Shown here: positions 16,823 through 62,715 of the stretch, piece after piece
Position numbering within the stretch: the first letter of the stretch is position 1
Layout: every line of letters starts with the position of its first letter
Assembly: GCA_965240325.2 (NCBI GenBank)
Contig: OZ251223.1
Location: 1,612,001-1,676,000, forward strand
Reading direction: 5' to 3'
Source of the DNA: Rebecca billardiae RCC1528
Taxonomy: Eukaryota; Protista; Haptophyta
Length of the DNA stretch: 64,000 bases
Notes under the pieces: generated by a model
What the model was told of the DNA's origin: nothing
Seen by the model: only the letters and a program-made list of their open reading frames with translations
The model's database searches: none
Position numbers and translations under genes: made by a program

Positions 16823-18733
16823 TCACGACGCCGCCGCGCCGGCTCGCAATGTCATCACGCACATGCCGTCCGGCTGCCGCCGAAAGCGCAGCGCGGCCCT
16901 CACGGTCAAGCCGCTGAATCGGCCAGTGCCGGCAGTGGTGTGATGGCTGTCCGTCGCGAGGGGGGGCTGCAACACGTGCTGCTCACCATCGCTCTGCTCC
17001 GAAGCCACTGGAGCCGTCCCAAATTCGTCAGGCTCTGCCCACGAGGCGGCTGCATCCGCATCGCCCGTCTCGGCTGCGAGCCCGACTGCTCGCACGCGTT
17101 CGATGGCCTCGCAGGCTTGCAGCAGCGCGATGCCCAGCAGCTGCATCTGGGCAAGGGCCAGGCGCGATGCAGGGCATCGCTTTGGGCCAGCCGAGAAGGG
17201 TAGCAGCCAGTTCGCGGCGGGAGAGCTTGCGGCTTCCGTGCCAGCGCGTTGGTCGACATGGCTGGCGTCGCCTCGGCCCACCTCTGCCTCGACGCCTGCC
17301 GGAGCTTCGGCGGCCGCGGTCGCGGCCTCGTGCGCACCCGCCTGCAGGTGACGGCCCAACCGCAACGCGGCAGCTGGTGGCGCCCAGTGCGTGGGCACGT
17401 GGTGTAGCAGCCACGGCGAGACCACGACAGCGTCGCCCCGGCGGAACGTGTGCAGCCTTTCTGAGCAGGACCCGGGCACATGCATCAGCGGCCGAGGCGC
17501 AGGCTCGCGCCTCGGGTACCCCCCGAGCAGCACGTGCACGTCGCGCGTTGCCGTGAGCCGCACGTGCGAGATGCCTGGGTGCAGCCGCAGCACCTCGAGC
17601 ACGAGCGCACCCAGGTGGCGGAGCGGCTGGTGGCGCTGGGCCAGGTGCTCGGCGGGCGCGGGTGCGCTCGCGAAGATGGGCGGGCCGGAAAGTACCAGCT
17701 GCTCGAACGAGACACGCCCATCGATCACCCCCGAGCGCACCTCGGCCCGCACGGCGGCGAGCTCGGCCTCTGGGGCCCCGCCGCCACGGGCCAGCGCCGA
17801 CACGAGCGCGAGCAGCTCGGTGCCCGCGTTGAGCGCGGCGAAGAGCAGGCCCGTGGCGTGTGCGACGGCCTGAGCGCGCAACGCCGCCTCGCCCTGCGAC
17901 GCGCCGCCGTCACGCTGCACGAGGAGGAGGGAACACAGCGTCACCGGCGGCTCTGCACCTGGTGGCTGGCCGCGCTGCGACCGGGTGGCGCAGGCGAGTT
18001 GCGAGTCAACAGCCTGGCCGACAATGCGCTCGAGGCGCTGCGCGAGCGTGCGGAACGTGGACCAGCCCTCGTAGCCCAGCCCATCGGTGTCGCTCAGCTG
18101 CGCGTGCTCGAGCAGCTCCTCGAACAGCGCGATCAGGACCTGTCGGTGGCGCTTTGAAAAGTTGTGACCCAGCAGCGTGCGCGAGGCCGCCGACAGCGCA
18201 AACCCCTGAAGCGCGCGGAGCACCGTTGGCTCGGGAACGCAGCCGAGCGGATGTGCCGCCTGGAGGTCGAGCAGCTCGTGCACAAGCTCGTTGCAGCACT
18301 CAGAGAGCGTCGGCAGCGAGGCGCGCAGGTGCGACAGGCCAAACAGCGGCGCGAGCGCCAACCGTGCTGCATCGTGCGGTGCGCCCTCCAGGAGCAGCAA
18401 CGAGCCGTCAAGGAACGGCCAGTAGCGTCGGTACATGGAGAGCTCGCGCACGAAGGCCTTGGACTCGCAGATACGCCTCGCCAGGGGCGCGTCGAGCACG
18501 AGAGCATACTTCGTCGCGCGGCCTGGCGCCACAGAGATCATGCCATCCGCCGCGTGCGCCTCAGCAGCTGCGAGGAGCTGCCTGCGCGTGGGCGCTCCGG
18601 GGAGCCTGAGCGTGACGAGGCTCGTGCGCTGCGGGCGATAGCACCGCAGGGCACGATACAGCGCGTACGACGTGACAGCCGCTGCCGCCGCGACGACAGC
18701 GGCGGGAAGAGCCGACTTTGATGTCCACGACAT
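16823..18733 (-). CDS. Cytochrome P450 (divergent)
   Basis: N-terminal membrane anchor, K-helix EVLR (ExxR) and heme motif PFSAGPKRCPA (FxxGxRxC). Confidence 0.85.
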   Translation of the reverse strand: MSWTSKSALPAAVVAAAAAVTSYALYRALRCYRPQRTSLVTLRLPGAPTRRQLLAAAEAHAADGMISVAPGRATKYALVLDAPLARRICESKAFVRELSMYRRYWPFLDGSLLLLEGAPHDAARLALAPLFGLSHLRASLPTLSECCNELVHELLDLQAAHPLGCVPEPTVLRALQGFALSAASRTLLGHNFSKRHRQVLIALFEELLEHAQLSDTDGLGYEGWSTFRTLAQRLERIVGQAVDSQLACATRSQRGQPPGAEPPVTLCSLLLVQRDGGASQGEAALRAQAVAHATGLLFAALNAGTELLALVSALARGGGAPEAELAAVRAEVRSGVIDGRVSFEQLVLSGPPIFASAPAPAEHLAQRHQPLRHLGALVLEVLRLHPGISHVRLTATRDVHVLLGGYPRREPAPRPLMHVPGSCSERLHTFRRGDAVVVSPWLLHHVPTHWAPPAAALRLGRHLQAGAHEAATAAAEAPAGVEAEVGRGDASHVDQRAGTEAASSPAANWLLPFSAGPKRCPASRLALAQMQLLGIALLQACEAIERVRAVGLAAETGDADAAASWAEPDEFGTAPVASEQSDGEQHVLQPPLATDSHHTTAGTGRFSGLTVRAALRFRRQPDGMCVMTLRAGAAAS

Positions 18734-19038
18734 CAAGACGCAGCACGCTTACTAGTTACCCGTCGGCCATCGTGCGAGGTCGTGCTGCTTTTGACCAAAA
18801 AAGTTTTTTAAAGGCCGCCGGATTGGCCGGAAGCCCGGATGATCCGGGTAGTGTAGGGCGTGTAGCTAGTACAGTAGTCGTCGATATTCCAGCAGATTTC
18901 TCTAATAATAATAGTATTATAAATAAACAATATTATAACAATAATTTACTACTCGTATATACCAGCGGTCCGTGCGGAGAGCGCGCCATGTGACGCAGTG
19001 AGTCACTGATCACTCAGCGCAGCCTGCCTGGCAGCCAC

Positions 19039-42443: not shown

Positions 42444-45400
42444 TCAAAGCACGCCCATCGGCGTGTCCGCTCCCGCGCACTGCGAGAGCGCCGGCAGGCA
42501 CTGCTCGGCCGTGCACGCGTGGCACGCGGCCGCGCGCGAGTCCCACGAGCAGCTCGAGCGGCACGTGGACTTGGAGCACGCGACCGCCGTGGCGAAGCAC
42601 TGCGCGCACGGCTCGGACAGCTCGAGCCCCTGCAGGCAGTGCTGCGTGCACGGCGGCTGCGCGCGGCGATGGCGCGGCGCAGCGGTGTGCACGCGGGGCG
42701 CGCGGCGTGAGCTCCGCGCGCGCCGCGCGCCGCGCGCCGCGCGCTTTGGCCGAGCGCGCCACGCGGGGCAGCGCAGGCGCGCGCAAAAAGCGCACCTGTC
42801 CCCAGCACTGCGAGGAGCACGTCTGCAGCTGGTCGGCGAAGGGCGTGGCGAAGATGGCGCGCTGGTCGCCGACGGCGCCGCACGCCGACACCGCCCGCGT
42901 GAGCGCCGGCACCGCCGGGCCGAGCGGCCCCCACCCAGCGAGCGAGCGCGCGCGCGCGCGCAGCGCAACGCTCGCGTGCGGCGGCAGCCCACTCAAGGTG
43001 CAGCGCGGGTGCTCGACGTCGCCCGGCACGGCCGGGCCGGCGGTTGGCGCGTCGGACTCGGCGGGCTCGGCGCCGTCCGCGCGGCGCTCGACGCGGCAGC
43101 CCGCCGCCCACTCCCCGCCGCCCTCCTCCGCCCCCAGCCGCGCCCAGTGCAGCTCGTACCCCACGACGGACGACGTCTCTTCGATGGCCCGCGGCCACGC
43201 CACACCCAGCCCGTCTGCGTAGCTGCGCGGCGCGGCGGTGGCGGCGGTGGCGGCGGTGGCGGGGCGGGAGCGGCGTGAGGGCGCGCACGCCCGGATGCAC
43301 CACCGCCACCGCGCCGCGCGCGCGGGGCTTGCGCGCGCGGGGCGTGCGCGCGCGCCGCGCACCGCTGCTCGATGACCAGGTCGACGGGCGCGCGCGGAGG
43401 CCGCAGCTCACGCGTGACGGCGGCGACGGGCGCGCTCCACTCGCCTGCGCCGTGCGCGTTGCGCGCGCGCACGGCGACGGTGTACACGGAGGCGGGGAGC
43501 AGCCCCTCGAGCACGTGCGTGCTGCGCGAGGGCGGCACGGCGCGCACCACGCCCTCGTGCGCGGGCAGCTCGTCCACCCCGCTGCGCGCCTCCACCACGC
43601 GCAACTCATACCCCAGCAGCGGCGCGCCGCGCGTGCGCGCCGGCTGCCACTGCAGCCGCAGCGCCGTCGGCGCCGCGCGAAACAGCAGCCCGCGCACCGC
43701 GGCGGGCGCGGTGGCGTTCTGCGCGTTGGTGGGCAGCGTGAGCGGCGCGGACCACTCCGAGTAGCCGTACGCGTTCCGCGCGCGCGCGCGCACGCTGTAC
43801 GAGTGCCCCGGCCCCTCCGGCCCGGCGCTCACGCGCGCCCACGCCAGCGGCTCGGAGCGAGCGGCCGGCAGCTCTCGCGCGCTCGCAAACGGCACCTCCG
43901 CGAGCTCCGTGCGCGGCGCGCAGCAGCGGCGGTCGTAGCACCAGCAGAACGGGCCGCAGCAGCCGACGAGGTTGGCGCCCTTGCAGTGCTCCCACATCGG
44001 CGCGAGCCGCGTGCCCTCCTCCGTCCAGTTCGCCCGGCCGAGCTGCGCGCAGCCGAGCGCGCACGACGGCCCCGTCTGCTCGCACGCGCGCACCGTCTGC
44101 AGCGCATACGAAGAGTGCTCGAGCTGGTAGCCGCTCACCTCGGCGCCGTTGGCGTGCGGCGGCGCCCACTGCACCTCGACCCACGAGACGCCCGTGTCGC
44201 GCGGCACGAGCGCGGGCGGGCGCGGCGCCGACGCCCCGCCCGTGCGCACGGCCGCGCACTCAGACCAGCGGCTGAGCTCGCCCCCAAGCGGCGCCCCCGT
44301 CACCTCAGCTCGCAGCTGTAGCCGCACGCGCGCGCACAGCGCGGTCTGCGCGGGCAGCCCGCCGAGCTCGACGCGCGTGCGCAGCCCGGCGTACGTCGCG
44401 AGCGGCGCGCCGTCGGGCCCCCCGCGCAGCAGCTGCACCTCGCTGCCCGCCGCGAACGCGCCCTCCGGCGGCGCGTCGCTCCAGTCCAGCTCGACAACAT
44501 CCCGACCGGCATAGAGCGGCCGCGGCGCGGCAGGCGAAAACGGTCGCGGGCCGCTGTCGCCGCCGTCGCCGCCGTCGCCGCCGCCGTGCGGCCGTCTCCT
44601 GGAGCCGCTGAGCGCGACGACGATCGCGACGAGCAGCACGCCCGCGAGGATCGCCGCCGCGTAGCAGCACAGCATGCGCCGCCGCCCGCTCTTGGGCGCG
44701 CCGTCGGCGGCCGCGGGCGCCTGCGCCCTGTCGCGCCGCCGCGCGCGCGCCGCCTCGCCCTCCGCGGCCGCGCTGTCGCGCGTGCCGGCGACGAGCAGGC
44801 GCGTGCGCCCGCTCTCGAGCTTCGAGCCGGCGTGCCCTGCCTCGGCGGCCGCCTGCGCGGCCGACGCCGACGCGCCGGGCGAGAGCGACGCCATGGCGCA
44901 CGCCAGGCTGCGCGCAGTGCTGCCGTCGGCAAGGGCCGCGTGTGCGCTCGCGCGCCGCGAGCCGGCCGCCGGGCTCCCGCCGCGCGCGGCCGGGCGTGCG
45001 CCGGGGCGTCGCTCTCGCTGCGGGCTGCCCGGCGCGGAGCCCACGCGGCTGCTCGGCACCGAGCCCACGCGGCTGCTCGGCACCGAGCCCACGCGGCTGC
45101 TCGGCGACGAGCGCAGCTCGAGCTGACCGGTCGAGTCGTCGATGTAGGCCTCGGCGCCGACCGAGGAGAGCAGCCAGCGGTCGCCGAGGACGGTGAGGCT
45201 CTTGTGCGAGCCGGGGCTGGTCATCTCGCTGCCGTGCGCGGCGCTGTGCGCCCCCTCGCTCTCGCCGCCCGACGAGTGCACCACGGTCACGGGCGGCGGC
45301 ACCGCCAGCGCGCCGGTGCCCTCATGCGGCTGCGTGCCACCGCTCGGCGTCGGTGGCTGCGCCGCACCGCCGCTGAAGCTGCCGCCGCCGCTCGAGCGGC

Positions 45401-45830
45401 GCGCGCGCGCCGCGGCGGTGGCAGCAGCCGCACCATGCGCAGCGCTCCCCGCGCGCGAGCCGCGGTGCGCCTGCGGCTGGACGCTCGGCGCGGGCGGCTC
45501 GGCTGCGAGCGGCTTGTCCCAGGTCGTCTCGTTGGTGAGCTGGTTCCAGTAGTACGTGTCGCCCGAGTCGGGGTCCTTGACGGGCACCCAGCCGGCGGCG
45601 AGGGCCGATCCTCCGCCGCCGAGAGGCCCGGGGGTCACTACTCCCGCCGCGACGTCGGCGCGAGTGCTGTGCGGCGGCGTTGACGGCACGTTGGTATCGC
45701 GCGACTGTGCGCACGCGCGCGCTCCGCCGCCTGGCGTGTGGGGGGCTCCGTCGGCGGCGACCTTGTCGGCGTGGCGAGACGACGCGTCACGCACCCCCCG
45801 CGCGCGCGATGCCCTGTCATCGCCGTCCAT
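42444..45830 (-). CDS. Single-pass membrane protein: WW domain, TM, about 4 fibronectin-III domains, Cys-rich C-terminal domain; introns 43223-43362 and 42657-42795
   Basis: WW GWVPVKDPDSGDTYYWNQLTNETTWDKP; TM AAILAGVLLVAIVVAL; FN3 motifs W.PP..NG..V.GY.L, YSVRARARNAYGYSEWS and L.GLLP...Y.V.VRARN..G.GEWS. Introns join in phase. Confidence 0.85.
45037..45108. repeat. 24-bp coding tandem repeat x3 (PSSRVGSV)
   Basis: GAGCCCACGCGGCTGCTCGGCACC repeated. Confidence 0.9.
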
Positions 45831-46321
45831 GACCCCCGACCCGCCGGATCCCGCGCGCGTGCGGCGCGACCGGCTGCGCGGCCGCTGCAGCAGCGGCGGG
45901 CGCGCGTTCAAGACGATGCGGATGCCTGCCGCCGCCCGCCTCTCCGCGACGTTTGTGGGCTCGGAATTCCCATTCAAAAATGGGTCGATTTTCGGCTTTC
46001 CGCACATGCTTTTCGGCACGATGGCGGCGACTGTGCGCACAAGCTTGTCGGTCCCGCTCGGGAGCAGGACTGAGGCGCGGACAGGCGGTTGCCTCCGGAC
46101 TCATGACGAAGTTCGTTTTTTTCCACCGAGGTGGTTTCGCGATCTCCTTGCGCGCGAGCTTGCGGCCGCACACTTGTGGCTCACGGGCGGGCGCCTCTCC
46201 TGCTCGCTCATCGACCAGGCGCGCGCATCGGGCGAGCGCACGTGGCCGGGCGCGGGCGCTCGAGCGAGACCGACTCCTCCCTCGCCAGCGGGTGGCGGAG
46301 CCGCCGACGCATCCGGTCGCC

Positions 46322-49300
46322 ATGGCGTGGGACGATGCGAACGCCGCCATCATGATCCAGAAGATCATCCGCGGCAAGATCGCGCGGCGCGAGGTGGCGC
46401 AGCGGCGGCTGCACGCCGCGGCGGGCGACATGCTGCTCACGCTGCTGGAGTCCACGCGGCTGGACACGGAGTCGAAGGTCGCGGCGGCGCGCATCACGCG
46501 CGACCTCGAGCGCCTGCCCGAGCTCGTGCCGCGCATGGGCTCGAAGAGCTCGTTCGACGAGCGCTCGCAGGCGACCAAGGAGGTCGCGTGGGTGCTGTGC
46601 GAGGTGCGCGGCGAGGAGATGGAGAAGCGCGCGTTCGAGGTGGTGCAGGAGTCGGGCGTGGCCGAGTACATCGTGCCGCTCGCGCGCGAGTGCCTCGAGC
46701 CGCCCAACACCGCCGTGCTCTACCCGCTGTTTGCAATCATGTCCAACCTGCCGACGCTCGGCCACAAGGCCGGCGAGCAGCTGCTGAAGGACTCGGGCTG
46801 CTTCGCGCTGCTCATCGACTGTCTGTACTCGGCGGACATGGGCGTGCAGTACTACGCCGCCGCGGGCGTCTCCAACATGTCGCACGACGTCGAGGCCGTG
46901 ACGATGGTGAAGAACAAGAAGGCGACCGCGCAGCTCGAGAAGCTCCTCGACTCCAACAACCGGCACATCATCAACTTCGCGCTCAAGGCGCTGGAGAACG
47001 TGAACGAGGTGCAGTCGGTGTTCGACTTCCTCTTCGGCCTCAAGAAGCAGGAGATCGCCGACCGCAAGGCGCGCATGGAGGCGGCGCGCGAGCGGTACCA
47101 GCAGATGTCCGACGCGGACGCGCGCAAGAGCTTTGCTGCCAAGCAGATCCAGCGGTGGATCCGCGGGCGGAACGTGCGGAAGGGGATGGCGCGCACGCTG
47201 GACGACCGGGCGGAGATCGCGCGCGCCGCCGTGCGCATCCAGGCCGCGGCGCGCGGGCGGATGGCGCGCAAGGTCTCGGCCGGCGTGCGCGCGCGGCTGC
47301 GCGCGCTGCGCATGCAGGCGGGCGTGTCCAAGGTGAGCGTCGCGCAGGCGCGCCTCAAGAAGCGCACCAAGACGAACCGGAAGAAGGTGATGCAGGCGGC
47401 GGGGCAGCGGCGGATCGAGCGGCTCGCCGCGCTCGCCGCGCGCCTCTCGAAGCACGACGGCGTCGTCGCGCACACCGCCATGCTGCTCGACGCGACCGAG
47501 CGCGAGCTCGAGACGCTCGAGGCGCACGCGGACGGGCCGCTCACAGACGAGTGCCACCGCATCCTGAAGGACCTGCTCGCGCGGTACGAGCTGGCGTGCG
47601 CGGGCGGCGGGCCGAGCGGCAAGTCGCGCCTCGAGCACGTCCAGCCGCTCGTCGCCAAGTTCGCCGGCGTCTTCCCCGACGTGGACGTGCACGCCGCGAT
47701 GCTCCTCTTTGGAACCAAGACAGAGCTCCTTTTTCTAGAGGAGGTGCGCGAGCCGTCCGACCCCGAGGCGAAGGCGGTGCTGGTGACGCTCTCGCTGCGG
47801 CACGAGGTGTCGCAGGCGCCGGCGAGCGGCGCGAGCGCCACCTTCCTCGAGAGCCTGTACGCGCTGGTCGAGCGGCACGAGGAGTCCGCGCGCACGCCCG
47901 TCCACCTGGCGATGCCGCTGTTTGGCACGATGGCCGAGGTGGAGGCGCTGGAGGGGATGGAGCCGGGCGGCATGGACGCGGAGGTGGCGCTCTCCGACCT
48001 GCACCTGCGCGTCGAGCTGGCGATCACGGCGCTGCAGATGCAGCGCTACGGCCGCGTGCGCGACTTCATGGCCACCGCCGCGCGCGGCGCGCTGCACGCC
48101 GGCATGCTCTTTGCGGCGACGAGCGGCGAGGTGCGGCGGCTCGAGGGCGCTTGGGACGCGCACGGCGGCCGCTTCGCCGACTCGGCGCACCCGCTGCTCG
48201 TGGAGCTGAGGCTGCGGTACGACATGCTCGCCGCGACGTCGGAGGGCGAGACCCGCCACTTCGACTCGACCGCCGCCGCCGCCGAGCCCGGCGCGCCCGC
48301 CCCGCCGCCGCGGCCGCGCGCGCGCGCGCAGCGCGCGCAGCAGCTCTTCCACAAGTACGAGGATGTGCAGGGGGTGAGTGTGCACCCGGGCATGCTGCTG
48401 TTCAGCACGCAGGCGGAGATGGAGCGGCTGGAGCACTCGAAGGAGCTCTCGTCGCGCGAGACGCTCATGATCCTCACCGACACGCGCGTGCGCCACGAGC
48501 TCGCCGCCGCCACGATCGAGGGCAACACGAAGCGGCTCGCCAAGGCGCACTGGCTGATGCTCAAGTTTGAAGATGTGCCGTATGTGCACTCCGCCATGCT
48601 GCTCGCCGGCACCAAGCCGGAGGTGAAGCGGCTCGAGACGCTCGAGCCGGGCTCGGAGGAGGCGCACGAGGTGCTCGAGGCGCTGCGCATGCGCTTCGAG
48701 CGCCAGGCCGCGCAGCTCCTGCAGATGAAGCGCGAGCGCGCCGAGCAGGCGGCCACCAACATGGCTGGCGGCGCGCGCACACTCGCGGCCGTCAGTGCGG
48801 TCCGCCCGACGGTGCAGGCCAAGGTGGAGCGCTCGACGGCGGTGGCGACGCACGCGCAGGCGGCGCACCGGCGGAACAAGGCGCAGCAGGAGGCGCAGCA
48901 GAAGCGCGAGCGCCAGGCCGCGCTCAACAAGGCGCAGCGCGTCTTCCCCGTCTACCAGCACGCGCGCGAGTCGATGGCCGAGAGGCACGTGGCGAAGAAG
49001 GACGCGGCGACCACGATGCAGGCGCACTACCGCGGGCAGCAGGCGCGCGGGCTCGCGGAGAAGAAGGAGGCGCGGCAGAGCGCGCTGCACCGCGCCGGCG
49101 TCGCCGGCCCCGCGACCAACGAGGCGGCGCGCAAGCTCAAGCACTCGACCGAGGTGCGCGTCGACGCGGCGATCACGCTGCAGCGCTACTGGCGCGGGTA
49201 CGCGGCGCGCAAGCTGTTTGCGCAGCGGCTCGTGAGCAATCAGCAGATCCGCGGCGTGATGAGCCTGGGGCCCGCGGTGTACCGCGTGCCGCCCGTCTTC

Positions 49301-50576
49301 GACAAGGCGCTCGCCAAGCGCCAGCGCGCCGCCATCCTCATCCAGCGCCACGCGCGCGGCCGCCTCGCGCGGCTGTATGCCGTGCACAAGCGCGAGGTGC
49401 TCGACGAGATGGGCGATCTCGCGTCTCTCTACCCGGTGCTGCATGAGGCGCGCGGCGCGCTCAAGTGGCTGAGCAAGCAGAAGCACTTCGCGGCGATCGA
49501 GATCCAGCGGCACTGGCGCGGTGCGCGCGCGCGCGCGGCGGCGGCGCGGCGGTTGCGCCAGGCCCGACGCCGGCCGAGGACGCGGCCGCCGCGCTCGGCG
49601 CGCAGCCCGCGCCTCCACCGCCGAGCCTCGCGCCTCGTGCCTCGCGCCTCACGCCCGCCCCTCGCCCGCGCGCGCGCGCGCGCCCGCGCCGCCGCAGGCT
49701 ACTCCGCACGCAAGCGCGTGCGCAAGCTGCTCGCGCGGATGGCTCGCGAGTACCGGCGGCGGCAGCAGCGCGAGTACGTCCTGCAGATGGACGCGCACAT
49801 GTACAGGCAGTACCAGACGCGCAAGACTCGGTGCGCGGCGCGGCGCGGCCGAGCCGGGGCGTCCCCCGCCGGCGCGGTCCGCCGCGCGCCGCGGCGCGCG
49901 CGCGCCTGCTGACGCGCGCCGCGCGCCGCTGCCCCGCCCCCCCCCGCGCCGCCCGCGCCGCCATCGCTCCACCAGCCACCCGATGCACGGCCTCCCGCCG
50001 GTCGACAGCGGCTCGATCTTCTACTCGCCGCCGCCGAAGACCTCCGCTGGCGTGCGCTCGCGATCGCCGCAGAGCACCCTCGGCGGCGCGTCGGAGCCCT
50101 CGCGTCCGGGCCGAGCGGGCCCGCGGCCGATCAGTGCGTACATGCCGCCGCAGCAGAGCTCGGTGATGGAGCGGCGGCCGGACAAGGAGCTGGACAACTT
50201 CCGCCACCTGCCGCAGACGCTCCGCTCCAACATCTCCTACTACCCGGGGCGCGCGTACCTACAGGCGATGCACGCGCTGCCCGCGCAGCCGCTGCGCAAG
50301 TATGTGAACACGCAGCGCGGCCAGTCGCTGCTGCAGCCGCTGCCGCGCCTGCCCAACGGCCTCGACACGCAGCTCGCGGAGACGCTGCACGTGCCGAGCT
50401 TCCAGCAGCCGCCGCCCAAGGAGCCGGACGACTTTGCCGAGCTCGCGTACGGGCGGCACAGCAACAGCCCGCCCCGCAGCCCCAAGACCACCAAGGGCTC
50501 GCGCGTCTCGCACAGCCCGGCGCAGCGCTCGAGTGCCGGCAAGCAGAAGCGGCTGGCGGCGACCACATCCTTCTGA
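46322..50576 (+). CDS. Large IQ-motif (calmodulin-binding) protein with ARM-like region and six internal helical repeats; introns 49521-49697 and 49831-49975
   Basis: IQ motifs IQKIIRG, IQRWIRG, IQAAARG, MQAHYRG, LQRYWRG, IQRHARG and IQRHWRG|YSAR (the last completed by splicing). ARM-like VQYYAAAGVSNM..LEKLL...NFALKALENV. Confidence 0.82.
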
Positions 50577-51541: not shown

Positions 51542-54463
51542 TCATGCCTCTGCGAGGGTCTCGTACAGCTCGACGCCCTTCTTTGAGGCCGTCTCCACGT
51601 CGGTGAGGTTGCTCCACAGGTCGAGCCGCACGAGCTGGTCGGCTCTGCGCGGGAGCGAGCCGCCCGGCAGCATCGAGGCGAACTCGTGGCGCAGCAGCGG
51701 CACGGTGAAGTCCGCCGGGTCGTGGTCGAGCGTGTTCGCCTTGGCGGCGATGTGCTCGCCCGGCTCGAGGTGGTTGGTCGAGAACGAGCTCTGGTTCCGA
51801 AAGTTTGGGTAGAGCATCCACTTGGCGCGGAGGTACATGAGCTCGATCAGGAACTTCTTCCACGAGCCCTTCCACCCGGGCACGGCCGAGTCGGGGATGG
51901 CGATGCGCTTGGGCGAGTCCGCGCCGGTGCGCAGCAGCAGCCACTCGCGGAAGTTGCGCCACGGCTGCGCGTAGAAGAGCGCACCCCACGAGCACGGCAG
52001 CTGCTGCGCAAACGGCTGGCCGCGCAGCTCGGCGTGCAGGTTGACCCGGCGGCGCGGGATCTTGACCTCGACGAGCCGCGGCGTGTACAGCGAGATGCCG
52101 ATCATGTCCGGGTCGGCCGCCGCCTCGCCCGAGTACCGGTACATGAGCAGCGCGTACTTGAGCCACGCGTAGAACGAGGGCGCCACCTCGATGTCGTCCT
52201 CGAGCAGCACCGCGTACTCGTCGTCACTCGCGGGCGTCCACGACTCGACGACGGCCGTGGCGAGCCCGGCGTGCGCCGCGCGCGCGTGCACGCTCTTCGG
52301 GCCGTGCGGCCAGTGGAACTGCGAGATGAAGCGGTGGGTCGGGTCGTCCGCGTTCGCGTCCAGCGCGAAGCGGATCGGCACCTCGTCCCCCAGGTAGTCT
52401 GCGCTCGCGAGCGCGTTGCACAGCCGCTTAAGCGAGTGCGCGCGCCGCCACGTGATCACGACGATCACGACGCGGGGCGCGTGCCACGCGGCGAGCGCGC
52501 GCGGCGAGAGCGTGCCCAGCCAGGAGAGCGTCTCGAGCTGCGGGCGCGGGAGGAGGATCGGCAGGCGCGCGCGCGGCACCGGCGCCTGCCCGTACGGCGC
52601 GGCCTCGGCGTCCGCGCCGTGCGCGGCGGGCGGCGCGCTCAGCTGAAGCCCGCGCGCGGCCGCGTCCGCCCACGGCGCGTCGCTCTCGGCGCCGCCAAAT
52701 GTCGTGCGCACCGCCACGGCGAGCGGGCAGGGGCGCGCGCCGTCGCCGACCGCGGCGATGACCAGCGTGGGCTGCACGGTCTCGCGCAGGTGGGCCAGCA
52801 CGCGCGCGAGCCGCCGCGCCTCGCCGACCGACGACTCGGCCTCGACGGCGCTGAACCAGCCGTCCGCGAGCGCAAAGGAGCGTCCCCACACCATGTCCCC
52901 GGCCGCCTCGGCGCCGGCCGCGCCGTCGTCCGCGGCGGGGGGCGAAGAAGAGGCGTCCGACGCGCCGGGCTGGGAGCCGCCGGGCGCGCGGCCGACGGCC
53001 ACGTCGCAGCGCACGCGCCGTGGCTCGGCCGCCGCCGCCGCCGCTCCGCGGCGCGCGCGAGCGCAGTGGGGCGCCAGCACTCGCAGGAGCTGGCGGCCGG
53101 CCGCATCGTCCGCGCCGACGAGCAGCCAGCGCTCGGTGGGTGCGGGCTGGGCACCGGCGTCGGCGTCGGCGCCGGGGCCGAAGCCGCCCGGCTCGGCGTC
53201 GGCGCGCGCCTCCGCCCCGCCCGCCTCCGCGGCGGGCGCGTCGATCGGCACGCGCACGCGGCCGTGCCGGCCGAGCGCAACAGGTGCCATCCCCGCGCGC
53301 AGCGCGCGAGACACGGCGCGGTCGGGCGCGGTGGGCCCGCGGCTCGAGGCGGGCCAGGACTCGGCCCGACGCGCGCCCGCGTCCCCCGTCAGCACCGTCT
53401 CCACGGGCAACACCGTCGTGCGCACGCCGAGCAGCCGGCGCAGCCCGTCGCTCAGCGCGAGCATCGCGCCGCCCGGCCCCAGGCCTGCGGGCGGCTCGGT
53501 GCCCAGCACGAGCTTGGCCCACGACTCGTGCAGTAGCGCCATGCCGTCCAGGTAGTCGACGTCGAGGGCGTGCTCGATGACGAGGCCGGAGGAGCTGTCG
53601 GGCGCGCATAGGTGGGCGTACGGCGCGTCGCCCTCGCCGCCCGCGCCGCGCGCGGGCACCGCACTCGCGGGAAGCACCACGCAGCCGGCCTCGCCATACA
53701 CGGCGGGTGTGCGCCCGTCCGCGAGGTCGAGCGCGGCCGCGGCGAGCGCGGAGCGGAGGAAGCGGTGGGAGGGGATGGCGTGCGGCTCGAGGAGCACGAC
53801 GTACGGCGTGGGGCTCTGCAGTGCCAGCTGCAGAGCGCCGTACTCGCGCAGCTCCGCCACGAGGCGCACCGCCTTGACCACCTCGGGCGCGCGCCTCTGC
53901 TCAGCCAGGGCGGCCTGCGCGGCTGCCTCGCGCGCCGCGCGCTCCGACGAGGTGGCGAGGCTGCCCACGCCGTACGTGACGACCCACACGCCGGATGGGC
54001 GCGCGTGCTGCGAGAGCAGCGCGCGCGTCTGCCGGCAGATGGTCCACGCCTCGTCGTGCGACGCGATCGCGGTGACGGGCGCGACCTCCGCCTCGCCCAG
54101 CAGCAGATTGCGCTCTCGCGCCTCGGCCATGAGCTGCGTCAGGGTCGGGCCGGTGCGCTCGAGCGCTGTGAAGAGTCGCTGGCGCCGCACCCTCCACACG
54201 CTCTCCACGAAGGATGGGCGCTCCGTGGCTGGCGGCGGCGGCGGCGGCGGTGGCCGTGCTCTGCATGTGCGCGGATGGTAGTTGTGCGACTGTCGGAGCA
54301 GCAGGGGCGTCCCGGCGTCGGCGTGCCCGAGCAGCGCGACGAACTGCACCACCACCGTGCTCACCGCGAAGATGAAGACGAAAGCCGCCACTTCGCGCAC
54401 GCGCACGCGGCGCAGGACTGCGCCGAGGCAGGCGCGCGCGCCGCCGACGTTCGCCCGCGACAT
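51542..54463 (-). CDS. GT-A fold (GT2-like) glycosyltransferase, type II membrane protein
   Basis: N-terminal TM; VIT..R..SL.RL..L..ADYLGD, WPHGPK, GL..AV.ESW, VLLEDDIEV, PCSWGA.F, FSTNHLEPGEH, as in the plant/algal/fungal GT2-like family. Confidence 0.82.
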   Translation of the reverse strand: MSRANVGGARACLGAVLRRVRVREVAAFVFIFAVSTVVVQFVALLGHADAGTPLLLRQSHNYHPRTCRARPPPPPPPPATERPSFVESVWRVRRQRLFTALERTGPTLTQLMAEARERNLLLGEAEVAPVTAIASHDEAWTICRQTRALLSQHARPSGVWVVTYGVGSLATSSERAAREAAAQAALAEQRRAPEVVKAVRLVAELREYGALQLALQSPTPYVVLLEPHAIPSHRFLRSALAAAALDLADGRTPAVYGEAGCVVLPASAVPARGAGGEGDAPYAHLCAPDSSSGLVIEHALDVDYLDGMALLHESWAKLVLGTEPPAGLGPGGAMLALSDGLRRLLGVRTTVLPVETVLTGDAGARRAESWPASSRGPTAPDRAVSRALRAGMAPVALGRHGRVRVPIDAPAAEAGGAEARADAEPGGFGPGADADAGAQPAPTERWLLVGADDAAGRQLLRVLAPHCARARRGAAAAAAEPRRVRCDVAVGRAPGGSQPGASDASSSPPAADDGAAGAEAAGDMVWGRSFALADGWFSAVEAESSVGEARRLARVLAHLRETVQPTLVIAAVGDGARPCPLAVAVRTTFGGAESDAPWADAAARGLQLSAPPAAHGADAEAAPYGQAPVPRARLPILLPRPQLETLSWLGTLSPRALAAWHAPRVVIVVITWRRAHSLKRLCNALASADYLGDEVPIRFALDANADDPTHRFISQFHWPHGPKSVHARAAHAGLATAVVESWTPASDDEYAVLLEDDIEVAPSFYAWLKYALLMYRYSGEAAADPDMIGISLYTPRLVEVKIPRRRVNLHAELRGQPFAQQLPCSWGALFYAQPWRNFREWLLLRTGADSPKRIAIPDSAVPGWKGSWKKFLIELMYLRAKWMLYPNFRNQSSFSTNHLEPGEHIAAKANTLDHDPADFTVPLLRHEFASMLPGGSLPRRADQLVRLDLWSNLTDVETASKKGVELYETLAEA

Positions 54464-54625
54464 CAGGATGGCGGTGTGCCCGGTGCCGGACCCGGGCAGT
54501 CCGGATTCTGCACGGCTGCATCTGCACCGGAACTCGCTGGTCCTTCCCGCGTCTGCGCGCGGAGGACGCCCTCGGTACGCCCGTCACGCCGACAGTGGAG
54601 CCCGCCAAGGCTGCCGCCTTCCGCG

Positions 54626-57478
54626 ATGAGCACACCCGCCGCGAACACGCGGCGCTCAAAGCTCTTGCGGCTGTGCGCGGGCGCGACGCTGGTGCTCGTC
54701 GGCGAGCTCTGCGTCGCCGCAGCACTCTTCGCGCGCACCGACGGCTGGTCTGCACTCTGGTCTCTTCGCGTGCGATTCACCGACACGCGCCACTCGTTTG
54801 CCGACGTGTTCGTGCTCATCGCTGTGAAGGCCATCCTTGTGGTCGTCTGCGGCGCGGCCGCGGCGTGGTTCGGGCGGCTCCCAGAGGCTGGCGACGAGTC
54901 CGCCCACGGGGGCGCCGCGCACCAGCGCGCCGATGACGACACCGTCGTCGTGCAGCCGCTGCTGCTCGGCGGCACCAACGGCGGCAGTAACGGCGGCGCC
55001 GCCAGCGGTGGTGCCGCGGCGGCCGGCACGAACGGCAATCGGGACAAGCTGGGCTTCGACGCGAAGCAGCGCGCGAACGTGCGCAGGCAGGGGCTCATCG
55101 CCGCCGTCTTCTTCTTCTCCACCGCCTTCCAGATGTTTGTCGGCATCAAGACGATCCAGTTTGCGTTTGCGGACGCGCTCCGGCAGGCGCTGATGCTCGG
55201 CGCGCTCATCGCCGGGACCAACCTGAGCACGTGGCTGGTCGTGCGCGCGGCCCGCGAGGCGACGGCGGACGACGGGTACTTCGTGCCCGAGTTCCACCCG
55301 CACCCGCTCTTCTACCGCCCGGAGGTCCCCTTCCGCAAGTGCGACCTGTGCAACGAGCGCGGCTCCACCTTCTACTCGTGCCGCAAGTGCGGCTTCGACG
55401 TGTGCCCGCGCTGCTACCACAAGAAGGACAAGAAGACGTCGGAGGGGCTGCTGCGCTCCGACTCCGGGTACAAGGAGCCGCCCGAGTTCTCCACGTACCA
55501 GTACATCGTCAACACCGCGCGGCTCGTCAAGCCGCACGTGCCGCTGTTTGTGGTGGCGGTGACGTGCCTGGTCGCGACCACGCTCACGCAGCTCTTCCTG
55601 CCCAACTACCAGGGCAAGATCCTCGACTCGATCGTGCAGGGCGACACGGAGGCGTTCCGCTCGGCGATCATGGTCTACCTCGTCCTCTCCGTCGGCACGG
55701 GGCTGCTGAACGCCGTGCGCTCGCTCTGCTTCAACGTGGCGATGCGCCAGATCGGCATGTCGCTGCGCAAGTCGCTCTTCTCGCAGATCATCTCGCAGGA
55801 CATGATCTTCTTCGACTCGATCAAGACGGGCGACCTGATCTCGCGGCTGTCGGGCAACATCGGCTCGATGCTCTCGCCGCTGCAGAACACGCTGCAGACG
55901 CTGCTCTCAAACCTCATCCTCCTCGTCGGCTCGCTCGTGATGTGCTTCGTGATCTCGTGGCGGCTCTCCTTCCTCGCGTTCACCACGCTCGCGCCGATCC
56001 TGTACATCACGGCCGCGTACGCGCGCTGGTCGCGCCGGCAGAACTACATGATCTGGCAGACGCTCGGCGACGCGAACGCCGACGCGGCCGAGGCGTTCAC
56101 CAACATGCGCCTCGTGCGCGCCTTCTCCACCGAGGAGATCGAGCGCGCCAAGTACGGCGAGAAGTGCGACCTCTCGCTGCGCAAGGGGATGCTCGACGCG
56201 CTGTACGGCACGCTCACCGTCACGCTCGGCGACTACCTCGACCAGGGCGCGTCGGTGATCATCCTGTGGTGCGGCGGCGCGACGGCGATGCAGCCCGACT
56301 CGGCGCTCAGCGTGGGGCGGCTCATCACGTACACGCTGTACTACAACAAGATCCAGTCCTCGTACAACGCGCTGAACGGCGTGCTCAACTCGTTCACGCG
56401 CTCGGCAGGCGCGGCGATGCGCGTGCTCTCGCTCTTCGACCTCACGCCCGACATCCCCTCGACGGACCCGAGCAAGGGCGAGGCGCTGCCGCCGGGCGCG
56501 CGCGAGGGCTGCGCCGTGCGCTTCGAGAATGTCGACTTCCACTACCAGCTGCGCCCGGAGCGCAAGGTGCTCGACGGCTTCTCGCTCGACGTGCCCGCGG
56601 GCACGGTCACTGCGCTCGTCGGCCGCTCGGGCGCGGGCAAGAGCACGTGCGCGTCGCTCCTGCTGCGCTTCTACGACGTGAAGGGCGGGCGGATCGTCGT
56701 GGACGGGCGGGACGTGCGCTCCCTCTCGGTGCGCTCGCTGCACTCCGCCATGGGCGTGGTCACGCAGGACACGCAGCTGTTCAACTCGTCCATCGAGGAC
56801 AACATCGCGTACGGGCTCGAGGTGCGAAGCTCTCTGCGCGAGCCCATCGCGCACCCAACCGCCCGCCGCGCTGCCCCGCGCCAAGGCCGCGCGCACCGCG
56901 CCGTGCGGAGCACGCGGGTCCGCGCGGCCGCGACAGCAGCAGCCGTTTGCAACGCGCCGCACCGCACCGCGCTCCCGGGTGGCTGACCGCCGCTGCGCGC
57001 GTGCGCGACCGCGCTTTCCCGCTGGGCGCAGGGCTACTCGCACGAGCAGCTCGTGCACGCCGCGCGCCAGGCGCAGGCGCATGACTTCATCATGGCGCTG
57101 CCTGACGGCTACCGCACGCGCGTCGGCGAGCGCGGCACTCGGCTCTCCGGAGGCCAGAAGCAGCGGCTGGCCATCTGCCGCGCGCTGCTGCGCAGGCCGC
57201 GCCTTCTGCTCCTGGACGAGGCGACGTCTTCGCTCGACGCGTCGAGCGAGGCCGAGGTGCAGGCCTCGCTCGACGCGCTCATCTGGACGGGCGAGCACAC
57301 CGTCATCCTGATCGCGCACCGCCTCTCCACCGTGGTGAACGCGCACCAGATTGCGCTGCTCGCGGACGGCGCTGTGGCGGAGAGCGGCACGCACGACGAG
57401 CTCATCGCCGCAGGGGGCCAGTACGCAGAGCTCGTGGCGCACCAGCTGCAGCAGCAGCGCGAGACGATACCCGAGTGA
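54626..57478 (+). CDS. ABCB half-transporter (TAP/ABCB9-like) with N-terminal TMD0 and inserted Cys/His zinc domain; intron 56822-57031
   Basis: ABC-TM motifs QD..FFD..KTGDL.SRL and EAF.N.R.VRAF; Walker A GRSGAGKST, Q-loop VTQD, signature LSGGQKQR, Walker B LLLDEATSSLD, AHRLST. Confidence 0.93.
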
Positions 57479-57850: not shown

Positions 57851-57965
57851 GTATGTATGTGTGTATATATATATATATATGTGTATATGTATATATATAC
57901 ATATATATATATATATATGTACAGAGAGAGAGAGAGAGCTGAGAGAGAGAGAGCCAGAGAGAGAG
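57851..57965. repeat. (TA)n/(GA)n microsatellite cluster
   Basis: Directly visible. Confidence 0.9.
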
Positions 57966-58201: not shown

Positions 58202-58689
58202 GGCTCCGGCTCCGGTCCACCCCCCCCCCCAGCTCCGTTACGTCTTGGCCCCGAGCCGAAGTCAACCAAGCGGACCATGCAGCAGAGTGAGACTGAGAGT
58301 CCCTTCCGATCCCCGATTGATGACTTCAACGAGAAATGTCGCATCCGACCACCTCCCAATAGGTTCAGACTCTATTTTTACTATGTAATTACCCGTCCCT
58401 TACTCAGATGTCAGCATAGTTCGGGAGCATTCCGGACACCTGTATACATATGCGAAAATCAAAATGATACCCGGAATGGGTATTTGGTTATAGAAAATAG
58501 AGTCTGAACCTATTGGAGGTGTGGCTGATGATGATCCATCTGGCCGTAATATCGTCCAAGGCGGACCGCCTGGGGTGGGCTAGGAGCTATTATTGTAGAT
58601 CATCAGAGGCGGCGATCCCGCCGATTGCAGTGTCAATATGTAACGCTCCACTGACCGGACTGGGGGGGGGGTGGACCGAAGCCGGAGCC
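58202..58689. mobile_element. MITE (488 bp) with about 29-bp TIRs and TAGT 4-bp TSD
   Basis: TAGT|GGCTCCGGCTCCGGTCCAC(C)n ... (G)nTGGACCGAAGCCGGAGCC|TAGT. Internal IR at 58352-58379 versus 58494-58519. Confidence 0.85.
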
Positions 58690-59006
58690 TAGTGCTAGCC
58701 GTGGGATCTCTGACTTCTTATTGCCCGCGATTGTCCCGATAGTGGTCGCTACCAGCGCCGTGCCCGCACATAGTAGCTATATACCTGGTAATTGTATCTG
58801 CGACGATCACTGCTGCCGATGGCGATGACTCTGATGCATCAGAGTCCGATATCGGCGCGATATAATTCGCCATCATCAGTTGCGCGTCAGCGGGTCAGAC
58901 TACGGTCAGCGATAATAGTAATAGTTCACTGCGCGGCTGAGTGAGAAAAATAATTATTGTTTGAGTCGTCAGCAGCATCGTCGCCGTCATCGCGCGCGTC
59001 TCTGCT

Positions 59007-59472
59007 GGCTCCGGCTTCGGTTGACCCCCCTAAGTCCGGTCACTGGAGCGTTACAGAGTCTTGACATGGAGATCGGCGCGGGATCGCCGCCTCTGATGAT
59101 CTACAATCGCTCTAGACCACCCGGCACTCCAGGCGGTCCCTTGGACGATATGACGGCAAGATGGATCGTCATCAGCCAAACTTCCTTCAGACTCGATTTT
59201 CTATAACTAACTACCCAACCCGGATGCCATTTCAATTTGCTCATATATGTATGTATATATATAGGTATCCGGATCACTCCCGGACAGTGCTAAAACCTGA
59301 GTAAGGGACGGGTAACTGTAAACATATATTTAGAGTATAAACATAGATGAGTCTGAACCTATTATTGGGAAGTTGTCATGTGCCCCATTCCTATACTGTA
59401 GTCGTTGAAGTCATAATCAGCTTAGGGGGTCGATGAATAAAGGGATTATATTTGGCTCCTGTCCGAAGAGCC
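59007..59472. mobile_element. Second, more diverged copy of the same MITE in opposite orientation
   Basis: Begins GGCTCCGGCTTCGGTTGACCCCCC. Blocks GGGATCGCCGCCTCTGATGATCTACAAT, CTGAGTAAGGGACGGGTAA, GAGTCTGAACCTATT and CGTTGAAGTCA are colinear reverse complements of 58320-58689. Confidence 0.8.
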
Positions 59473-59591: not shown

Positions 59592-61777
59592 TCAGACCAT
59601 TTCATGAACAGCCTGCTTCAAGCTGCTCGTGTCGTCAGCTGCCCCTGCTTGCGCGTCACGCTGCTCGACTCTGTCCAGTCTGCCGCCCAGGAAGCCAGCT
59701 CCCTGCGGCCTGGGGAGGGGAGACGGTGCCTTTCCCCCCTCGGACGAGCCCGCTGAGCTCGCGGAAGTGCGCCTGGACTTCGAGTTGGAGAGACGCCTCC
59801 GCTTCGGGAGCAGGCGGGCAAAGCGTCCCGCCTGGCGCCTTCGTTTGTCGCCGACCGCAGCAAAAAGCTCCAGCATTGAGAGCTGGTGCCCTACTCGCGA
59901 GCGCACGCCGAGCACGAGCTTGACGATTCGATTGAACTCCTCGGCACCACCCTCGCTCGCCTCGACGATGGCGAGCAGCAGCGCGCGGTCGCGCGCCTTG
60001 GAGCACTGCGCGTTGCGCACGTCCAAGCCCTTCGTGAGCTCGCTCTGGTCGTGCTCGCCGCACGCGCTGGGCACGTACGGCACGTGCAAGTCGCGCATGC
60101 TGCGGCGCATCTGCACAAACACGAAGATCTCGATGAGCGTCCAGAGGCGACTTGGATACGTGGTGCCGGCGAGCACGACAAACTGCTGGCACGCCGCGAT
60201 CCACACGGGCAGGCACTGCAGGTTCTCCGAGATGCGCGACTGGTCGACGCAGAAGCGGTCGAGCTGCGGGGACGTCAGCCGGGCGGGGGGCGCGCCGGGC
60301 CGGTCAGCTGGCGGCACGCGGAGACAGACCGGTTCGCCGGCGGTCGCCGCTCCCGCTCCCGCTGCGCGCGGTGGTGTCGTGCGCGCGCGCGCGCGGCTGC
60401 GCACCCACACGCGCGGCTCGCGCCGATGCTCCTTGACAAAGCGCTCACGCCACTGCTGCAGCTGCGCCCACTTGCAGTCGACTTCATCGCTCCAGCTGTG
60501 GGAGAGGAACTGCGCGCGTGATGGGGCGCGCGCGGGCGGGCATCGCAGTCGTCAGGCGCGTGCGGCCGCGGGCGCGTCTCCGCACACCCACGCCATCCGC
60601 GTGGCTGGCGCACGGTGCGCGTGCGGCGCACACGCACCCCGTCCGCTTCGCCAAGGAGAGCTGGCACCGAGAGCTCCCACAGGGCGGGGTCGGGCACGCT
60701 CGAGCGCAGGTGCTCCTTCGTGATGAGCTCGATAGGGACCACGCGGAAGCGCTCGGACGCGAGCTTCTGCACGACTCTCGGCTCGTCATCGCCCAGCATC
60801 GACGCGATCGCCGCGGCCATCCCCACCGCCTCTGAGCGCGCGGCCAGCCACAGGTGAACCCGCCTCCGCACGGCGGGCGTCATCATCGCGCCCCCGACAA
60901 AGAGGAGACCAAAGAGCAGGACCCAGGTCGCCGCAGTCTCCACGGAGCTCTCGTGGCAGTCGTACTGGTACCTGACCACCAGGCTCACAGCCGGGAAGAA
61001 GCCGCCGAAGAAGAAGCTCGCACCCATCCAGAACCATGCGCCTGCGAGCCTGATCCGAGTGGCCATGCTGGCGCTGAGCGCGAGCCGCAGCAAGTTGGCA
61101 CCGCTCACCAACCCGAGAAAGCTCCAGCCGGCCATGGTGACGATCCAGGAGAGCATGCACGGGCACGAGACGCGATCGTGCGCGAACATATCCACACACT
61201 CCCGAGCGCCCAGGTCCGGCTGCAACACCACGAGCCACCACAGGTCACCGAAGGCGAGCGAGAACATGGCCAGGCACAGGGCGGCGAGGACAAAGCACGT
61301 GTACTTCACGTGGCGCTCCCGCGAAGGCGAGACGAGGCTGACGAGGGCGAAGACTGTGAATGGGCACATACTCGACGGCACCAGCTGCGACTCCGCGCAG
61401 TGCCAGCCGGTCTTGAAGCACGCGATCCCAAAGCCGACTAGTGAACCGGCGAGCACGATGGTGAAGCTGCCCGCGCCGATGACGAGCGGTGCGAGGACGC
61501 GCAAGCGGTAGCTCCGCCGCGTGGAGCGCTTCATGGCCTCCAGCTGGGCCGATATCTGCTGTGCCGATGGCACCGGCGAGACGTCCTGCGAGGCCCCGTC
61601 CGCGCCTGAGCCTGGCAGCAAATCATTCAGCGCAGCATCCTGCTGCGCCCACGTCCCCCACGACAGGCTGGATAGAGCGGCCGACCAGACCCTCGAGCGA
61701 CGGTCGCTGCGCGGCTCAGCCATGCTGCCGCTGGAATCGTCGCGCACCAGCCGGGGGCTGCTGCTGCACTGCCCCAT
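59592..61777 (-). CDS. Multi-pass membrane protein with C-terminal TIR-like (TIR_2) domain; introns 60510-60637 and 60264-60404
   Basis: MGQC N-terminus and about 6 TM helices. Spliced C-terminus DG|FLSHSWSD...KW..L..W...PRVW|LDRFCVDQ...LPVWIAAC..FVVLAGTTYPSRLWTLIEIF follows the TIR betaA (FxSHS), betaB (WxD) and alphaC (S.W...E) pattern. Confidence 0.8.
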
Positions 61778-61968
61778 CGGTGGGATTCACTGCCAGCCGG
61801 TGGCCTCCGCCATGAATGTTTGACGGCGCCCAAACAAGCAGGCGGTCGCTCGGCAGCTCAGCCCCGAGTCCGGCGACTCAAGAGAATGGACACTGCGCAG
61901 GACCAAGCGGTCACTTGACGCCCAGCGCCTGCTGCCACCGATTCGCGTACGCAGCATTCATCACCGCG

Positions 61969-62715
61969 ATGCTGGCCGGCACCTGCCTTCTGCTGGCCAC
62001 GAGCGCAGCGCGCTCGGTGCACCACCGTGTTGGGCCGCTCCGGGCTAGCAGCATCTCACCACCCGCCTCGTCAGCATGGGACATCCGGGAGCGGGCACCA
62101 GCGTCGGACAGCTCGGTGTTCTTCGTGCTGGGTGGGCCGGGCAGTGGGAAGGGCACACAGTGCGATCTGCTGCGAGAGGCGTTTGGCATGTGCCACCTGA
62201 GCGCAGGCGACCTCCTTCGTGCCGAGGCGAGCAAGCCGACTGAGCTCGGCGAGTCCATCTCGAAGATCCTCGTTGAGGGCCAGATCGTGCCATCCCACGT
62301 GACCGTGTCCCTGCTGGCTGCTGCCATGCGCGAACGGCCTGGGCCCTTCCTCATTGACGGCTTTCCTCGCTCGATGGAGAACCTGAAGGAATACAAGGAA
62401 GGGATGGGTGACGATGCCACGTGCGAATTCGTGCTTTTTCTCGACCTGTCCGAGGAGGTCATGTGCCGGCGGCTGCTCGGGCGCTCAGAGGTCAGCGATC
62501 GGTCTGACGACAACGAGGTGACCATCAAGAAGCGCTTCAAGACCTTCCAGGAGCAGACCATGCCTGTGATCGACCTTATGGCGAAGCAAGGGCTCGTTCG
62601 TCGCGTCCCAGCCGATGGCACCCCGGAAGAGGTGTTTGCAGCGGTGCGCAGTCTCTTTGACGACGCATTGGCAGCCTCGTCCCCTCAAGTCCTGCCAAGC
62701 CCGAGAGCGGGCTGA
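61969..62715 (+). CDS. UMP-CMP kinase (adenylate kinase family), probably organelle-targeted
   Basis: FVLGGPGSGKGTQC, HLSAGDLLR, GQIVP, FLIDGFPR, RSDDN..TIKKRF; signal-like N-terminus. Confidence 0.92.
   Translation: MLAGTCLLLATSAARSVHHRVGPLRASSISPPASSAWDIRERAPASDSSVFFVLGGPGSGKGTQCDLLREAFGMCHLSAGDLLRAEASKPTELGESISKILVEGQIVPSHVTVSLLAAAMRERPGPFLIDGFPRSMENLKEYKEGMGDDATCEFVLFLDLSEEVMCRRLLGRSEVSDRSDDNEVTIKKRFKTFQEQTMPVIDLMAKQGLVRRVPADGTPEEVFAAVRSLFDDALAASSPQVLPSPRAG

Follow-up and report, generated by a model that had tools for sequence, protein, structure and literature searches.

The gene analysed here lies on contig OZ251223.1 of the haptophyte Rebecca billardiae RCC1528 (assembly GCA_965240325.2), in a stretch of 64,000 nucleotides (nt; contig positions 1,612,001 to 1,676,000) that is referred to below as the window, and whose numbering is used throughout. 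On the minus strand, positions 59592-61777 cover exactly, from ATG to stop codon, a nuclear three-exon gene with a spliced product of 638 amino acids (aa). The product is almost certainly a six-pass membrane protein with a cytosolic domain of TIR-type fold and strongly constrained residues, and it may be an enzyme that is controlled from the membrane. The parts of the gene are as follows.

60638..61777 (-), exon 1: 380 codons, with the MGQC N-terminus, six transmembrane (TM) helices and a linker ending LLGEADG
60510..60637 (-), intron 1: 128 nt, GTGCGT...GCGCAG, phase 0
60405..60509 (-), exon 2: 35 codons, with betaA (FLSHSW), alphaA and betaB (REPRVW)
60264..60404 (-), intron 2: 141 nt, GTGCGC...CCGCAG, in frame and stop-free
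59595..60263 (-), exon 3, coding part: 223 codons, with LDRFCVDQ, alphaB, betaC, alphaC with E460, the remainder of the domain to about 59874, and a tail
59595..59873 (-), C-terminal tail: 93 aa, basic, low-complexity, Ser/Gly/Ala-rich
59592..59594 (-), stop codon TGA, which ends exon 3

Both introns are canonical GT-AG introns. A first-pass annotation of this DNA had described a domain that is divided over three exons and hidden from the track of open reading frames (ORFs). This is indeed the case: the track sees the gene only as two overlapping fragments, of 500 aa (60275-61777) and 272 aa (59592-60410). The 272-aa ORF is a result of prokaryote-style ORF calling, because intron 2 is in frame and stop-free.

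The splicing is supported by comparison with homologues. Removal of intron 1 gives LGEADGFLSHSW, which fits the family consensus LGxCDAFxSHSW without gaps, and removal of intron 2 restores the family motif VW-LDRFCVDQ. When the read-through of exon 2, intron 2 and exon 3 is aligned with P0003 (a JGI protein of 475 aa), there is a single gap, which corresponds exactly to the 47 codons of intron 2. With BLAST, the spliced 638-aa protein aligned to >100 homologues; across residues ~290-535 the identity is 35-43%, and the E-values go down to 1e-60. There are no gaps at either junction against uninterrupted homologues, including P0091, which is the product of a Trinity transcript. These alignments support the splicing that the first-pass annotation had modelled. 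The three-exon gene model is confirmed as real, far beyond chance similarity, on the basis of homology and not of RNA. Elsewhere this DNA is recorded publicly only as a Logan contig (run ERR14847151), which is unspliced. Were intron 2 retained, an insert of 47 residues rich in Ala, Arg and Pro would separate betaB from the DxxCxDQ motif.

There is an in-frame TGA 12 nt upstream of the MGQC ATG. The N-terminal sequence MGQCSS fits the pattern for N-myristoylation, with an adjacent Cys, and is compatible with a cytosolic N-terminus. A gene of adenylate-kinase type (Pfam ADK) lies head-to-head with the present one, at 61816-62715 (+), and its first ATG is 38 nt from the MGQC ATG at 61777. With this spacing, either the two genes share part of their 5' untranslated regions or, for one of them, translation starts further in; there is a signal-peptide-like Met at ~61969. 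Because the first ATG of the kinase ORF is so close, the MGQC start and the acylation proposed for it are not secure. The motif noted in the first-pass annotation is thus present and has the right pattern, but its position at the start of the protein is uncertain. At the other end of the gene, the 93-aa tail has no counterpart in the homologues, where the median tail is 36 aa. It may be a disordered region, or the gene model may have an incorrect 3' end.

Membrane module and linker

The first two parts of the protein are encoded entirely by exon 1.

60869..61486 (-), six-helix membrane module: residues ~98-303 by hydropathy, with a Cys pair in the TM3-TM4 loop
60662..60868 (-), juxtamembrane linker: residues ~304-372, with RRRVHLW, an Ala-rich helix (AAAIA) and RFRVVP

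Hydropathy analysis gives six hydrophobic segments, at residues ~98-120, 132-150, 161-185, 207-228, 248-268 and 283-303, in line with the approximately six helices that had been noticed from the sequence. The segments on the cytosolic side (the N-terminal flank, loops 2-3 and 4-5, and the region following TM6) contain 16 Lys or Arg, 2 Asp or Glu and no Cys. The outer loops (1-2, 3-4 and 5-6) contain 4 Lys or Arg, 8 Asp or Glu and 4 Cys in all. Because of these loop charges (the positive-inside rule) and the even number of helices, both termini and the C-terminal domain are predicted to be cytosolic. The predicted N-in/C-in topology places the domain in the cytosol and not in the lumen.

The family alignment and the AlphaFold2 (AF2) model of the homologue P0091 agree that loop 3-4 contains a conserved Cys pair within a predicted β-hairpin. 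The module of the window protein maps onto this model, which has six long helices, the loop hairpin, two linker helices and the α/β domain, in that order. The linker is amphipathic, and joins TM6 to the C-terminal domain. It has Ala, Gly and Phe columns that are nearly invariant across family alignments, and in the P0091 model it forms two helices and a short strand.

The membrane module is much more variable than the domain, having 18% identity to P0091 compared to 48% for the domain. It has no recurrent Pfam family: a Pfam scan of each family member gave singleton weak matches only, and in the N-terminal 380 aa of the window protein no leucine-rich repeat (LRR) or other Pfam domain was found. 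A search of the module against PDB profiles produced marginal matches only, to claudin-3 (E = 0.026) and to the TM region of an NMDA receptor (E = 0.11), and these were rejected as compositional. Foldseek gave only low-probability matches to G-protein-coupled receptor fusions and BI-1-like proteins, with a root mean square deviation of >20 Å. Every assignment of the six-helix module was rejected. A word-based homology search with exon 1 returned the window's own ORF only.

Motifs and predicted fold of the C-terminal domain

59874..60661 (-), TIR/HET-like domain: residues ~373-545 (~170 aa), split by both introns
60240..60263 (-), LDRFCVDQ, HET-type motif: end of betaB and BB-loop region, directly after the Trp with which exon 2 ends
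60129..60131 (-), GAG codon of Glu460 (in SRLWTLIE): catalytic-type glutamate, by alignment

Candidates for the three conserved blocks that HET shares with TIR (PMC4986451) are visible by eye as FLSHSW, VWLDRFCVDQ and SRLWTLIE. As a set (SHSW, WxDxxCxDQ and RLWxxxE) they are closer to the fungal HET type. In an alignment of 93 family sequences, with positions numbered on the read-through of exon 2, intron 2 and exon 3, the invariant positions are F1, H4, W6, K13, W35, D84, C87, L100, P101, G115, R121, L122, W123, E127 and C169. E127 is Glu460 of the spliced protein, and is present in 93/93. A larger count was made on 231 domain copies, using the non-gap copies at each position. Overall identity among these is 35-50%. 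The position of Glu460 is Glu in 223/224 copies, the His of SHSW is found in 222/222, and an Arg and a Trp are each found in 224/224. In the WxDxxCxDQ motif, Asp is conserved in 224/225, Cys in 221/225 and Gln in 219/224. The putative active-site residues, as identified from the sequences, are under near-absolute constraint.

Pfam was run on the 93 members with a threshold of E ≤ 0.1. TIR_2 was found in 64/93 (best E = 6e-7), HET in 31/93 (best 0.0018) and TIR in 10/93. The domain of P0003 matches HET with E = 0.006, in the central motif only, and TIR_2 with E = 0.039. The gathering score of HET (PF06985) is not reached, the best score being 17.3 against 22.5 bits and covering profile positions 40-63 only; the Pfam HET model scores the middle block alone. 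Three family members have a precomputed assignment to TIR_2 (PF13676, Pfam clan STIR). In public databases some members are named 'TIR domain-containing' and one 'Heterokaryon incompatibility domain-containing'. Taken from the profile matches, the family appears to sit between Pfam HET and TIR_2. The earlier label of TIR-like holds for the fold and for the glutamate, but the motifs, WxDxxCxDQ in particular, are of HET type.

A profile search of PDB sequences had TIR domains as its five best matches (SNC1, SIGIRR and RPPT), with E = 0.17-0.76, and a single-sequence PDB search with the domain of a homologue found nothing. In the profile alignment, the family motif RLWcxxE is set against STWCLNE of SNC1, and E460 lies over the Glu of the WCLNEL motif, which we take to be the catalytic residue E84. 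NAD hydrolases (NADases) of the TIR type use a Glu at the start of alphaC (E84 in SNC1, E642 in SARM1). E460 is at the N-terminal end of alphaC in both of the AF2 models described below. The glutamate is consequently of the catalytic type, as the first reading of the sequence had suggested, judging by its alignment, position and conservation.

The AF2 model of the window domain carries the 47-aa insert encoded by intron 2. It has a predicted local distance difference test score (pLDDT) of 82, with the order betaA-alphaA-betaB-(insert)-alphaB-betaC-alphaC. Foldseek matched this model mostly to plant TIR domains, with weak scores (E = 0.07-0.3), the weakness being likely due to the insert. The clean homologue P0091 was modelled at full length, on a 62-sequence alignment that included the exons of the window gene, and gave a pLDDT of 85.9 and a predicted TM-score (pTM) of 0.79. 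In a Foldseek search of P0091 against the PDB, SNC1, RPP1, RUN1 and RPPT were on top, with RPS4, AbTir and the SPARTA TIR lower. Most Foldseek probabilities were 0.94-1.00, with 0.80 for RPS4 and 0.75-0.85 for SPARTA. The alignments covered ~155-185 columns, and the target-normalised TM-scores, for stand-alone TIR-domain entries, were 0.42-0.56. In a library of viral structures, a 'Toll-like receptor' of Chrysochromulina ericina virus (CeV-01B) was matched with a probability of 0.99 and a TIR/WD40 protein of Tetraselmis virus with 0.96. The prediction of a TIR-type, flavodoxin-like α/β fold is solid at the level of the models, and here too the first-pass annotation was right.

Relatives, known systems and neighbouring genes

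An exhaustive HMMER search with the window domain found 1,835 representative proteins at E ≤ 1e-3, including 1,001 at E ≤ 1e-10. The highest non-self identity to the window domain is ≤49%. The existence of relatives had been expected; the named ones are dinoflagellates (Symbiodinium, Effrenium, Prorocentrum, Zooxanthella, Kryptoperidinium and Yihiella). In 143 members the part ahead of the domain is ≥200 residues long, and 120 of these show 4-7 hydrophobic peaks in that part; for several members the BLAST alignments extend into TM4-6. By these sequence comparisons, the window protein belongs to a large protist family with a multi-TM N-terminus, a linker and a HET/TIR-like domain.

No second copy was found within the window, either with tblastn or with the family hidden Markov model on the six-frame translation. 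The best non-self match, P0107 (ENA, 1110 aa), comes from an AT-richer organism, and in it the whole unit of multi-TM module and domain is tandemly duplicated. A further homologue, L002:1141-2515 (JGI metagenome 3300038657, GC 65%), comes from a GC-rich, intron-bearing genome. Its site for intron 1 is empty; it has one intron a few codons past the site of intron 2, and another later. Because these introns are at other sites, the positions of the introns have not been conserved.

In the structural searches the plant TNL and TIR-only NADases (SNC1, RPP1, RUN1 and RPS4) match best; they have the same order of betaA-alphaA-betaB-alphaB-betaC-alphaC and an xSxxWCxxEL-like motif that aligns with the catalytic-type Glu of the window protein. 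The identity is 15-22%, and for the most part the scores fall short of the Pfam cut-offs. At the position of SFRG the window protein has SHSW, it has the WxDxxCxDQ motif in the BB loop, and its domain is attached to a six-pass membrane module and not to NB-ARC-LRR. Judged by eye, it has what look like all three hallmark blocks (xSHSW, WxDxxCxDQ and RxWxxxE) of fungal HET (PF06985), a remote relative of TIR. However, HET proteins are soluble or NLR-linked and not polytopic, and the family matches TIR_2 more often than HET. By analogy, the domain would work most like the plant and bacterial TIR NADases, while its motifs look most like fungal HET.

Other membrane proteins provide further comparisons. 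A highly active NADase that is tethered by a TM segment is known from Dictyostelium, namely TirC (PMC13142454). Like the window protein, as predicted, it has a membrane-tethered cytosolic domain of TIR type, and its tether restrains a toxic, Glu-dependent NADase; unlike the window protein, it has a single N-terminal helix, is a recent bacterial acquisition, and lacks a six-helix module or conserved linker (PMC13142454). Toll-like and IL-1 receptors are membrane proteins that also carry a TIR-superfamily domain on the cytosolic side. They cross the membrane once and have LRR or immunoglobulin ectodomains, whereas the window protein has six TM helices and no LRR or ectodomain that Pfam could find. 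In algae, a Chlamydomonas TIR makes 3' cyclic ADP-ribose (3'cADPR) (bioRxiv 10.64898/2026.04.20.719644).

The first-pass annotation had rated the novelty of the protein higher than the literature allows. A link between HET and TIR had been made with HHpred. Work from 2014-2015 noted homologues of HET in stramenopiles, green algae and Haptophyceae (PMC4986451, PMC4540973), those in Haptophyceae already in 2014 (PMC4986451). In 2025, virus-responsive genes were described in Gephyrocapsa huxleyi that have multi-TM N-termini followed by TIR domains with a conserved Glu (PMC12489294). This is also a GC-rich marine protist; the likeness is by published description and not by sequence (PMC12489294). 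Pfam TIR models were used to choose these genes, and the exon translations of the window gene give no match to such models. Neither the algal occurrence of the domain type nor the idea of multi-TM plus TIR is new. The family has been annotated automatically yet is experimentally untouched, and its six-helix membrane module is novel.

The other genes identified in the window by Pfam are listed below. They are ordinary eukaryotic genes and not a defence cluster.

2050-5691 (+), NT-C2 protein
13408-15357 (+), homeodomain protein
16823-18736 (-), P450
23299-26022 (-), nucleotide-diphospho-sugar transferase
42993-46040 (-), WW+fn3 protein
45953-49912 (+), Arm/IQ protein
53612-56986 (+), C1-domain plus ABC transporter

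Scans of the window for tRNA genes and Rfam families found nothing. On the 3' side of the gene, ~280 nt away, is a long imperfect inverted repeat (58389-59315), with flanks at 57851-57928 and 59229-59272. Its arms are collinear over ~300 nt (58389-58700 and 59006-59315), are 79-100% complementary and are separated by a spacer of ~300 nt. It is bordered by (TA/TG)n tracts and lies within a block of low GC (54%). It may be a foldback element or resemble a miniature inverted-repeat transposable element.

Proposed function and its alternatives

On the basis of these observations, we hypothesise that the protein is a membrane-bound enzyme of the TIR superfamily. Glu460 would cleave NAD+ or a related nucleotide, as in TIR NADases, and so deplete the substrate or yield signals of ADP-ribose (ADPR) type. 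The membrane module and the linker would restrain or trigger the activity of the domain, or its oligomerisation, and the output would be stress, immune or cell-death signalling. The parts of this chain differ in strength. The structural part (a six-pass protein, a cytosolic TIR-fold domain and constrained residues) is highly probable. Cleavage that depends on Glu460 is argued by analogy, and could about equally well prove right or wrong, and an immune role, also drawn from analogy, is less probable than that. For the whole chain, from membrane control of the enzyme to signalling, immune or death output, we judge it on balance slightly probable. The interpretation given in the first-pass annotation is supported in part: its structural predictions hold, and the receptor role of the membrane module and the immune or antiviral role that it proposed are hypothetical.

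Several observations weigh against this proposal. The motif set is HET-like, and no domain with HET motifs has demonstrated enzymatic activity, so that the activity of HET is still unknown (PMC10197012). Pfam found no relevant match in the exon translations of the window gene or in the read-through of exon 2, intron 2 and exon 3. Within the family, all of the HET matches and most of the TIR_2 matches are below the curated cut-offs. In the structural search the best Foldseek E-value is 0.027, with none at E ≤ 0.001, and the TM-score is only ~0.5. That the glutamate is in the pocket is suggested by two things, its alignment and its position at the start of alphaC. PADLOC, with its models of anti-phage defence proteins such as ThsB, gave no match at E ≤ 0.1 for the window domain and four homologues, the Pfam scan of the window revealed no defence-type neighbours, and the MGQC start codon is not secure.

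The simplest objection is that the gene is a pseudogene or an artefact, made up of chance motifs in GC-rich sequence. Windows of this kind do yield many long spurious ORFs on both strands, and neither the 93-aa tail nor the start codon has support from homologues. Against this, homology with E-values to 1e-60 runs across both junctions, the introns are canonical, the frame is intact and every family-invariant residue is present. This explanation is scarcely credible, and was rejected. A more serious proposal is that the domain is a non-enzymatic adaptor, which functions in homotypic assembly or in recruiting partners, with the membrane module as a mere anchor. HET was indeed first interpreted as an adaptor-like relative of TIR (PMC4986451), and the similarity to enzymatic TIRs at the level of sequence is weak. 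However, Glu, His, Asp, Cys and Arg are almost invariant in the 231 copies, a pattern more like that of an active site than of an interface, and structurally the domain is matched best by plant and bacterial TIRs that are enzymes. We therefore regard an adaptor as unlikely.

The emphasis could also be reversed, such that the six-helix module is a channel or transporter, possibly oligomeric, and the flavodoxin-like tail binds a ligand of NAD or ADPR type in order to gate it. The six-TM architecture with its conserved, tightly coupled linker would suit a channel, and the tandem duplication of the whole module in P0107 suggests a multimeric function. It is nevertheless quite unlikely, given that neither PDB profiles nor Foldseek gave any significant similarity to channels or transporters, and that conservation is far lower in the TM module than in the domain. 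Finally, the family might function in allorecognition or fusion incompatibility of the HET type, in which a polymorphic surface module detects non-self at contact or mating and the domain kills. The HET-type motifs, the size of the family and its fast-evolving N-terminal module are in keeping with this, as is the finding that HET domains alone cause death in fungi (PMC10197012). We give it little credence as the role of this protein. It could go together with NADase activity, being a proposal on what the protein does for the cell and not on its chemistry.

A bolder version of the enzymatic proposal is that the family forms a protist-wide, membrane-gated class that bridges HET and TIR. The six-helix module, with a disulfide-stabilised outer hairpin, would sense an extracellular or luminal cue, the linker would relay it, and Glu460 would make a messenger of cADPR type. 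This is speculative, and as a whole rather unlikely. If true, it would provide the first biochemical function for the HET motif set, and we presume that the membrane-bound ADP-ribosyl cyclase activity long sought in protists could then reside in this family.

No known immune enzymes are more widespread than TIR domains, and the eukaryotic clades beyond animals and land plants are nearly all uncharacterised; TIR clades confined to eukaryotes are likewise recognised as uncharacterised (PMC13142454). The family described here combines a TIR fold and Glu with HET-type motifs and a dedicated six-pass module, in ~1,800 sequence clusters of marine protists. It offers a workable system for two questions, namely whether domains of HET type act as NADases and by what means a polytopic membrane module governs an enzyme of this sort. 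The gain for the window gene itself is modest, as it is one divergent member; the protein does not represent a system of a new kind, but it is a good candidate that can be tested directly. If the family is virus-responsive, like the multi-TM TIR genes of G. huxleyi (PMC12489294), it would bear on the termination of blooms and on the arms races between hosts and viruses.

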